Shown here: positions 24,788-26,131 of the stretch, one piece after another | How the letters are laid out: each line of letters begins with the position of its first letter | Numbering within the stretch: position 1 is the stretch's first letter | DNA from: Chara braunii | Lineage: Eukaryota; Plantae; Charophyceae | Direction of reading: 5' to 3' | DNA: 64,000 bases | Assembly: GCA_003427395.1 (NCBI GenBank) | Contig: BFEA01000013.1 | Location: 1,634,755-1,698,754, forward strand | Notes under the pieces: generated by a model | Databases searched by the model: none | Told to the model about the DNA's origin: nothing | What the model saw: only the letters and a program-made list of their open reading frames with translations | Translations under genes and position numbers: made by a program

Positions 24788-25006
24788 CTACNNNNNNNNN
24801 NNNNNNNNNNNNNNNNNNNNNNNNNNNNNNNNNNNNNNNNNNNNNNNNNNNNNNNNNNNNNNNNNNNNNNNNNNNNNNNNNNNNNNNNNNNNNNNNNNNN
24901 NNNNNNNNNNNNNNNNNNNNNNNNNNCTGGTGTGGGTGAGTGATAGTCTACTTTGATTTTGGTTAAGGTAGATTATCATTTACAGTGTAATCAGTGAGGG
25001 GATTCT

Positions 25007-25066
25007 GCAGACTGTTGAGGGTTCAGCCTCCTGATGAGTCGGTGAAACTCCGACGAAACAGTTTGT
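25007..25066 (+). ncRNA. Type III hammerhead ribozyme, perfect core (predicted GUU cleavage after 25016), within family 1 copy 24927-25072
   Basis: Stem III gcagactgt/acagtttgt; stem I gagg/cctc; CTGATGA 25031-25037; stem II gtcgg/ccgac; GAAA 25055-25058. Confidence 0.92.
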
Positions 25067-26131
25067 CACAGCTGTCGTCTTCCACATGTCATTTCCAAAG
25101 AGAGGTCTTCTTCGAAACGTCAATCCACAGAGCTCCATTGCTCTCTACTGGTGTCCTTCCATATCTTCTTCCTTCATTCACTCCTTAAAGGTTTAAAGTT
25201 TATTTGGGCTCTCAGACCACCAGTACATCCGAGCCTCTTCTTGCCGAGGTGCATTCCCCGTGCGCGCCAAGCTTCTCCGAAACATCTGCGCGATGCTTTT
25301 CCTATTCTTTTGGCCAGTGGTGCCCTCTATTTTGGTCCGGCAGCCCCGAGCCTCGCCCAAACTTCTTGAGAACGGCAGCTTTTCGATTCTCAAGTTTGCA
25401 TGCCTGTGCGATGTACCTGCGGTTTAAGGTCAACCTGGTTTTCCTTGATTGTTTATTGTTGAGGTGCAACATCTGTTTCAGAAGTTTCATTGCATCTTCA
25501 ACGTCTTCTCATCTCTCCATTCTTCTTCAGGGCATACTCACACTAGCACTTTCCAAAATGCATCTGACTGCACTTGAGGTCAGACCTCCACAAATCTGAC
25601 TGCAATCGCAGCCAGAGCTTTGTAGAAAACGTCCTAGTGTGAGTACGCGCTCAGAGTGTTTGATCCTTCAGCCGGCAATCGGTACTTCACAGTGCATGCA
25701 ACGTCATCAAACTCTAGTTTTTTCGATTTCCTAAAAGGCTCATTTGACATATATTTACTGACTTTTTCCACTTATCTGTGGGTGCAATTGTGGTCAGATA
25801 CATCCAGGTCTGCCTTTAATTGCGGCCAGATACATCCAGGAAAGTCCTAGTATGAATACGTATGCCGTCGTCTGGTTCATCGCCACCATCTTCTCCCCTT
25901 TTTGCATCCCGTTAAAGTCTCCAGCCTCTTCTCCCATTTCTTCTTCAGAGTGTTTGTTGAACGTCGATTCTTTGGAGTGCTTGCAGTCTCATTCATTGCA
26001 CACGCACACTAGGACTTGCAGTCAGATACATCCGAGTTGGGCGGTAATTACGGTCAGATTCATAATGACTTTGGTGTCATTATGGTTAGCATCAGCATCG
26101 TGATTGTCATCTCGATCATCATCATCATCTA

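Follow-up and report, generated by a model that had tools for sequence, protein, structure and literature searches.

Known retroelements with hammerhead ribozymes comprise the LTR retrozymes of angiosperms, which carry type III ribozymes and depend on Gypsy elements, and the non-LTR retrozymes of animals, which carry type I ribozymes and are tied to Penelope-like elements (PLEs). The kinship of these two kinds of retrozyme, and the origin of plant type III hammerheads and of viroid-like RNAs, is an open question. Minimal hammerheads in the pseudo-LTRs of canonical PLEs are reportedly type I motifs with almost no helix III that act as dimers (Cervera & de la Pena 2014; Lunse et al. 2017). Angiosperm retrozymes are non-autonomous and non-coding, with two ∼350-bp LTRs, a tRNA-Met PBS, a PPT and 4-bp target duplications; their RNA is strongly structured, and the ribozyme is not its ground-state fold (PMC4918200). 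Metazoan non-LTR retrozymes are short (150–400 nt), lie mostly in tandem arrays and have proven circular RNAs (PMC7229834; 10.64898/2026.07.22.740005), and they have been argued to be non-autonomous PLE derivatives (10.64898/2026.07.22.740005; PMC7761336). PLE insertions are recognized by 5′ truncation, partial tandems, inverted 5′-truncated partners, microsatellite targets and pseudo-LTRs (PMC8557442). The genome of the charophyte Chara braunii contains Chlamys-1_cBra, a ∼1,800-aa Chlamys PLE with a weak Josephin motif and a Cys/His motif at its C-terminus, and canonical hammerheads occur in two other Chara PLE types, Chlamys-2_cBra (near the 3′ end) and PLE-X (PMC8557442). The main text of that paper gives no ribozyme type, short non-coding family or rod for the Chara PLEs.

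We analyzed 64,000 nucleotides of C. braunii contig BFEA01000013.1 (hereafter the window), which contain several copies of a short ribozyme-bearing repeat unit. With a probability of roughly 60%, we consider this unit to be a SINE-like, non-coding retroelement with a type III hammerhead that is retrozyme-like and is copied by the enzymes of Chlamys-type PLEs. Among described systems it is most like the animal non-LTR retrozymes, differing from them by its type III ribozyme and its charophyte host. It is likewise short, non-coding and ribozyme-bearing, it shares with them the lack of LTRs, PBS and PPT and a highly self-paired RNA, and for each a status as non-autonomous derivative or passenger of PLEs has been proposed. 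Unlike the metazoan elements, the Chara unit occurs, in the loci examined, mostly as dispersed or chained truncated copies, and it resides in a streptophyte alga alongside PLEs with an N-terminal endonuclease (Chlamys). The Chara Chlamys PLEs with hammerheads share with it a genome and the presence of a hammerhead, and microsatellite targets and inverted 5′-truncated partners are likewise described for PLEs; however, Chlamys-2_cBra and PLE-X are described as autonomous elements of several kb with ORFs, which would set the short, non-coding unit apart (PMC8557442). Angiosperm retrozymes resemble the unit in their type III ribozyme, non-autonomy, lack of coding capacity and structured RNA with the ribozyme outside the ground-state fold, whereas their LTRs, PBS, PPT, target duplications and Gypsy dependence have no counterpart in it. 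Compared with the minimal hammerheads of PLE pseudo-LTRs, which are also Penelope-associated, the Chara ribozyme is of type III, monomeric and built of three helices, with helix III extending over 9 bp.

An initial annotation, made from the letters of the window, had proposed that this green, non-angiosperm genome harbours a non-autonomous ribozyme retroelement that combines non-LTR ends with a type III hammerhead. The absence of an ORF or LTR and the truncated, microsatellite-tailed copies described below bear this out. Its further claim, that the element was not described before, is only partly true because Craig et al. 2021 (PMC8557442) reported hammerheads in two C. braunii Chlamys subclades. 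The annotation also overlooked that the element behaves as a satellite of Chlamys PLEs would, and that its unit forms a long hairpin, specific to one strand, that is predicted to mask the ribozyme.

The window is a gapped draft sequence, and copies of the unit were found in it by self-BLAST and direct reading. Two further Chara loci, L001 and L006, were reached via Josephin proteins (see below). The unit is ∼370 nt long in a short form and ∼450 nt in a long form. Copy A, a long-form copy identified by self-BLAST and folding, is 5′-truncated after (AT)n and occupies 12763–13102 (+), 340 nt in all; a fuller copy in L006 has ∼376 nt plus (AT)n, so that the repeat is longer than the ∼300 bp first assigned to it. 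Copy A consists of a 5′ arm (12763–12848), an 81-nt tip insert (12849–12929), a hammerhead arm (12930–13041, with the ribozyme itself at 12978–13033) and a tail (13042–13102). A short subfamily lacks the tip insert (12849–12929 in copy A coordinates), and its deletion joint (12848>12930) recurs in L006 7617–7898 and in RNA reads, showing that it is expressed.

The remaining pieces in the window are truncated to different degrees. Copy A2 (13123–13202, +) is a 5′-truncated, tail-only copy in tandem with copy A whose terminal GTGACGAT leads into (ATCT)n and (AT)n. Upstream of copy A, an inverted fragment with the 3′ part of the hammerhead (12652–12691, −) lies head-to-head with a tail piece of extreme 5′ truncation (12711–12750, +) that ends in TTGACGAT(AT)n, and copy D (11487–11571, −) is again tail only. 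Copy B (24411–24683, −; Rfam and BLAST) is a long-form copy that begins at unit position 12803 and carries a hammerhead at 24448–24503; it adjoins the 3′ end of a Josephin-encoding element tail-to-tail. Head-to-head with it, across an AT filler, is copy B2 (24697–24787, +), which is 5′-truncated inside the hammerhead and ends in TTGACGATATAT. Copy C (24927–25072, +) belongs to the short subfamily and contains the best hammerhead (25009–25064); an assembly gap interrupts the copy on its 5′ side, and beyond 25072 other sequence takes the place of the tail. A2, the head-to-head pair, D, B2 and C were all detected by BLAST. The initial annotation had placed all its motif sites inside one repeat and missed the 81-nt-deletion subfamily and the extra pieces at 11487–11571 (−), 12711–12750 (+) and 13123–13202 (+). 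Likewise, the truncated motif that it gave as 24697–24712 (+) exists by BLAST, but the piece reaches 24787.

At TA microsatellites, unit copies terminate in GTGACGAT(AT)n, and all intact tails read (T)TGACGAT before passing into (AT)n or a related microsatellite. Copies are joined both head-to-tail and head-to-head, with 5′ truncation at varied points. Ten genomic 5′ start points span 12961–13076 (copy A coordinates) and cluster near the predicted cleavage site. This spread of starts, together with read breakpoints at 12989–12994 and 13014, does not support a start of the truncated copies at precisely that site. The presumed full 5′ end is seen in one copy only, at L006 7511. The unit contains no notable ORF and no LTR pair, and a 46-aa ORF across it, used as a protein query for further copies, found no match. 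tRNA scans of the window, L001 and L006 found no tRNA genes, and thus there is no sign in these three loci of a tRNA-derived SINE head. The window contains no dimer with two complete ribozymes.

The five motif sites of the initial annotation are all present, as Rfam matches or, for the truncated pieces, by BLAST. The Rfam gathering score for Hammerhead_3 (RF00008) is 48.5 bits, and E-value mode is needed to list the matches; a default scan of the window at the gathering threshold lists no hammerhead because the scores fall below 48.5 bits. In E-value mode, RF00008 matches copy C end-to-end (25009–25064, +; 45.8 bits, E 1.7e-7) and is matched over the whole model by copy B (24448–24503, −; 40.4 bits) and copy A (12978–13033, +; 35.9 bits). 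A further hammerhead scores 39.8 bits, and the E-values of all four range from 1.7e-7 to 1e-4. This Infernal/Rfam comparison had been proposed in the initial annotation; it keeps Hammerhead_3 as the match for the unit among the hammerhead clan families, though below the gathering score, and the motif does not qualify as type I.

The 60-nt RNA 25007–25066 from copy C has a three-way hammerhead junction as its minimum-energy fold (−22.2 kcal/mol, z −2.9). Its topology is that of type III, with helices I and II closed by loops and helix III open; together with the full-length RF00008 match, this confirms the complete type III hammerhead first noticed there. The motif has the CUGAUGA and GAAA core elements, a GUU triplet, and stems III, I and II of 9, 4 and 5 bp, respectively; cleavage is predicted after GUU, between 25016 and 25017. 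The copy B motif at 24446–24505 (−) had been called intact, which is accurate for the core, although stem II closes with a G-U pair (CGAUGAAAC). Copy A is inactivated: as noted previously for 12976–13035, GAAA is altered to AAAA (G12A, position 13024), and position 12988 adds a second defect, a mismatch in stem I. A core-killing mutation is also found in L006 7747–7810. The pattern CTGATGAG-N10-30-GAAAC is present at three places in the window, whereas shuffled sequence would yield 0.05. In a six-copy alignment, 95% of cells in the hammerhead helices are paired. Among the few genomic copies compared, conservation is not clearly higher in the ribozyme than in the flanking sequence.

The same ribozyme occurs in a second, otherwise unrelated repeat family of the window, at 38664–38727 (−), where it was recognized by self-BLAST, core pattern and alignment. 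This copy is diverged, with a GUC triplet, weakened stems and a T-rich tract behind it, and it folds poorly alone in minimum-energy prediction. It supplies both of the compensatory pairs found in the six-copy alignment. The second family (38664–39190) has a different body and tail, and the strand-asymmetry and fold comparison found no rod in it.

The L006 unit (7511–7886) is predicted to fold into one long hairpin (−154.6 kcal/mol, z −6.5), as is copy A (−121.3 kcal/mol, z −2.55), with a 5′ arm that mirrors the hammerhead arm in degenerate antisense form. Over a rod of 236 nt, 21 of 95 pairs are G-U, and the sense strand folds at −116.8 kcal/mol versus −55.9 kcal/mol for the antisense, an asymmetry that none of 300 equally long random segments reaches (mean 11.9, maximum 55). 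Measured against perfectly complementary arms, 17 transitions leave wobble pairing intact and four break pairing. Rod pairs are kept at 69/72 in copy A, 33/37 in copy B and 25/25 in copy C. Among four copies only, three of the four subfamily-shared changes preserve pairing, five of the six private changes break it, and 9% of paired versus 28% of unpaired columns are variable. These modelled features point to selection on the sense RNA, for a sample of four copies.

Since the 5′ arm mirrors the ribozyme arm, the full-length sense RNA is predicted to form a G-U-rich rod in which the ribozyme is off. Consistent with this model, a fold constrained to contain the hammerhead helices is 17.8 kcal/mol less stable than the best fold in copy A, which has the 5′ arm, and 0.4–1.7 kcal/mol less stable in copies B (0.4) and C, which lack it. 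RNAalifold on the copies returns the tip helix and the hammerhead, with helix III longer by 5 bp. The antisense image in the 5′ arm has lost the catalytic core that the sense copy keeps, so only one polarity is predicted to be able to cleave. Such a whole-unit, strand-specific rod, predicted to mask the ribozyme in full-length RNA, is new here.

The family is transcribed. We compared two 2026 oligo-dT RNA-seq runs and two older contig sets with 12500–13300. The two runs contain 5.9 and 14.2 thousand family reads (at least 88% identity), with a bias towards the sense strand of 3–4 fold in one run and ∼1.6–4 fold in the other (first-mate ratio, if the libraries are stranded). The read consensus restores both copy A defects, with G at 13024 in 92–95% of reads and G at 12988 in >90%, and retains every core nucleotide. 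Among the variants listed, the ribozyme has one other frequent site, the cleavage position (N17), which carries U or C, a tolerated variation. RNA depth changes little along the 5′ arm and rises 5–15 fold from the bin starting at 12986, and loose read ends at 12989–12994 and 13014 run into varied AT-rich flanks; the rise and the varied flanks indicate many 5′-truncated genomic copies rather than RNA ends. Joints in reads and contigs that go back or switch strand mirror the genomic tandem and inverted joins. RNA ends or circular junctions at the cleavage site, which the initial annotation had suggested seeking, were not seen in these oligo-dT libraries, which are ill-suited to the purpose: many reads cross 12985/12986 with no pile-up of ends there, no position in 12500–13300 is listed as one where RNA molecules start or stop, and no circular-RNA signal is separable from the genomic tandem joins.

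The neighbours of the unit link it to PLEs. A Gypsy LTR retrotransposon (13235–22314, +; LTRs 13235–14406 and 21119–22314, PBS 14409–14420) with protease (PR), RT, RNase H and integrase domains by Pfam sits within (TA)n between copy A2 and a 5′-truncated retroelement that encodes Josephin (Pfam) and a Cys/His finger (22327–24410, +). The Gypsy element is a later insertion; its removal in silico places A/A2 directly before the Josephin element and copy B directly after it. The Josephin ORF is 89% identical to the hypothetical protein CBR_g37361 of C. braunii (GCA_003427395.1), a short protein. Unit copies are chained to 5′-truncated Josephin-element copies in three independent loci (the window, L001 and L006), and the chained Josephin copies end in GTGACAAT(AT)n. 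In L001, a tail-only unit is followed by GACGATATATAT and then by a Josephin copy, 95% identical to that of the window, which has a different truncation point and ends in GTGACAATATATATAT. In L006, a short-form unit at 7511–7898 stands right after (AT)n with a longer Josephin-family copy behind it. In a second chain there (14040–15010), two Josephin 3′ UTRs enclose a short unknown piece and a truncated unit, in that order; beyond (AT)n follow a unit and a Josephin 3′ UTR, both inverted, and every piece terminates in GTGAC(G/A)A(T/C)AT(AT)n. The unit thus shows the Penelope-like hallmarks of 5′ truncation, partial tandems, inverted 5′-truncated partners and microsatellite targets, with Penelope-style joins in the window (12652–12750 and 24411–24787), L001 (9900–10015) and L006 (14040–15010).

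The longer Josephin copy of L006 has upstream ORFs with RT motifs A, B and C (DFTTMY, GIPMW, YRLIDDVL), followed by FLG...SVFDKA, which we take to be the PLE DKG/DKA motif. Look-alikes of these ORFs found with a language model carry RVT_1 and PF26215 (HTH_animal) or are rotifer RT fragments; Pfam (E up to 10) and PDB sequence searches gave no match, and single-sequence AlphaFold models had pLDDT values of 33–37, unusable for fold searches. No GIY-YIG domain was seen in the co-inserted Josephin element. We regard the element at 22327–24410, whose Josephin and Cys/His regions match the C-terminus described for Chlamys-1_cBra (PMC8557442), as a putative PLE of that type. Co-insertion, a common terminal motif of ∼10 nt and the literature lead us to infer that the unit is mobilised by PLE enzymes. 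In the loci examined, no RT partner carrying unit sequence was found. Two candidate routes to an autonomous partner were rejected: the two long matches among cluster-representative proteins belong to host genes (HEAT-repeat and separase) whose last exon stems from a TE, and the ORF at 21979–22824 had no protein match and lies partly in the Gypsy 3′ LTR.

The copies could instead be 5′-truncated 3′ ends or pseudo-LTRs of a catalogued autonomous hammerhead Chlamys element, Chlamys-2_cBra or PLE-X. Both Chlamys-2_cBra, with its canonical 3′ hammerhead, and the third Chara PLE type fit such an origin (PMC8557442), as does the fact that most copies seen are 5′-truncated. However, the L006 copy starts straight after (AT)n, 106 nt upstream of the copy A start, with no ORF before it, and in one RNA run a 30-nt stretch upstream is consistent with the 5′ sequence of this copy (0.96 agreement). 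The flat RNA depth over the 5′ arm, where there is no steady fall, and the inverted-arm rod, a self-contained design, also argue against truncated ends of a longer element, and we consider this origin rather unlikely. A decayed plant-type LTR retrozyme mobilised by Ty3/Gypsy would account for the type III ribozyme, as in angiosperm retrozymes, and for the Gypsy element that adjoins copy A. Yet no LTR pair surrounds an internal region, the two exact tRNA-iMet PBS of the window (9794–9805 and 14409–14420) both lie in neighbouring LTR elements, the unit ends are microsatellite-tailed and 5′-truncated, and the Gypsy element inserted later into (TA)n. Since PBS and LTRs belong to neighbours, we reject this reading as highly improbable.

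The hammerhead may also be a decaying relic without a present role, in a repeat born of inverted duplication whose functional part is its long, imperfect hairpin, a source of RNA for small-RNA (Dicer) pathways. G-U-rich, strand-asymmetric hairpins are typical of hairpin-RNA loci that arise by inverted duplication, the rod makes the hammerhead 17.8 kcal/mol costlier to form, the core is dead in several copies, and the oligo-dT RNA-seq data are without cleavage ends. Against a relic, the expressed consensus keeps all core nucleotides, with only the tolerated N17 variant frequent among those listed; the second family combines another body and tail with the same ribozyme and compensatory stem changes; and the core is lost in the antisense image and kept in the sense copy. 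We judge a relic to be improbable, and both this and the LTR-retrozyme explanation are weaker than truncated ends of an autonomous Chlamys element.

The RNA of the unit consists of a 5′ arm, a tip, a 3′ arm with a complete type III hammerhead, and a ∼70-nt tail ending in GUGACGAU(AU)n. If the unit is a PLE-copied, retrozyme-like element, as we favour, the RT and endonuclease of Chlamys-type PLEs, including the Josephin type with the same 3′ end, would copy this RNA into TA microsatellites. Reverse transcription may often halt within or just behind the ribozyme, yielding the many 5′-truncated copies, and template jumps by the RT could produce the mixed head-to-tail and inverted chains. In full-length sense RNA the rod would keep the ribozyme off; when the 5′ arm is missing, the hammerhead is predicted to be nearly isoenergetic with the best fold. 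By analogy with retrozymes, the ribozyme would probably serve to release unit-length RNA from multimeric or read-through transcripts. Circularisation might come after cleavage, and we infer both steps. A more far-reaching, tentative conjecture, which we think has less than an even chance of being right, is that the unit represents a third kind of retrozyme: rod-like, viroid-like type III RNAs that are cut from multimers, circularised and copied by PLEs into TA microsatellites.

By joining a type III ribozyme, a viroid-like rod and Penelope-style insertion, the charophyte unit links plant and animal retrozymes, and as an abundant, transcribed intermediate it makes the question of their kinship testable. 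The predicted rod-masked ribozyme offers a natural on/off design for study and a case of selection on mobile-element RNA. If the third kind of retrozyme proves real, type III ribozyme circles would have existed in the streptophyte lineage before land plants, and PLE-associated elements would become candidates for the ancestry of angiosperm retrozymes and, at a further remove, of hammerhead viroids.

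The Josephin retroelement, a 5′-truncated Josephin and Cys/His-finger element (22327–24410, +) of putative Chlamys-1_cBra-type Penelope-like affinity, has further occurrences in Chara gene models and on contigs from outside the window. Two Chara gene models, P0003 (1706 aa) and P0004 (2058 aa), represent HEAT-repeat and separase-like host genes, and their last 50–55 residues share 90–95% identity with the retroelement ORF. This shared end reflects either a last exon of TE origin or an error of gene annotation. At L006, a further Chara locus where hammerhead units are chained to Josephin-family copies, the Josephin-family element contains a near-perfect hairpin of ∼100 nt (10805–10909); several miRNA precursor models match it, all below threshold. 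Josephin-element sequence is also present on two ∼1 kb contigs from a different assembly (ENA ERZ27272674), L004 and L005. The Josephin protein encoded on L004 is 47% identical to the window ORF. L005 shares 85% DNA identity with the window copy of the element and terminates in the same tail-to-tail GTGACAATATAT join, which indicates that these elements also exist in a related charophyte or strain.

The window also holds traces of other mobile elements and RNAs. A Helitron remnant (54846–60222, −) encodes Helitron_like_N and split PIF1 helicase ORFs, and a second LTR retrotransposon (3999–4553 and 9794–9805, −) is marked by an RVT_1 ORF together with a primer-binding site that matches tRNA-iMet exactly. 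An Rfam match to group II intron domains V/VI (36297–36373, −; 44.0 against a gathering score of 40) may reflect insertion of organelle DNA into the nuclear scaffold. A U6 snRNA-like sequence (63474–63577, +) reaches 47.3 bits, where the gathering score is 44; its 5′ stem is poor and the terminal U run is absent.

Rfam searches also place a type III hammerhead on two JGI metagenome contigs, L003 (Ga0114903_1000585; 3440–3494, +) and L002 (Ga0114902_1000484; 8195–8223, −), which are 99.6% identical to each other and have a GC content of 56%. The hammerhead scores 53.6 bits, above the Rfam threshold, and 29 nt spanning its core, helix II and loop are identical to the Chara ribozyme. This hammerhead is probably of prokaryotic or phage origin, since a Shine-Dalgarno-like site and an ATG lie downstream of it.

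The 3′ signature of the hammerhead unit, TTTGACGATATAT, also terminates another, unrelated sequence at ∼62556–62566 (−), which suggests that this 3′ end is common to several families. The loose ends of oligo-dT RNA-seq reads aligned to 12500–13300 reveal a subset of transcripts that diverge from the hammerhead-unit family at 13031, directly behind the ribozyme, and run on into another tail, which is T-rich (agreement 0.65). Different tails may thus be joined to the ribozyme module.
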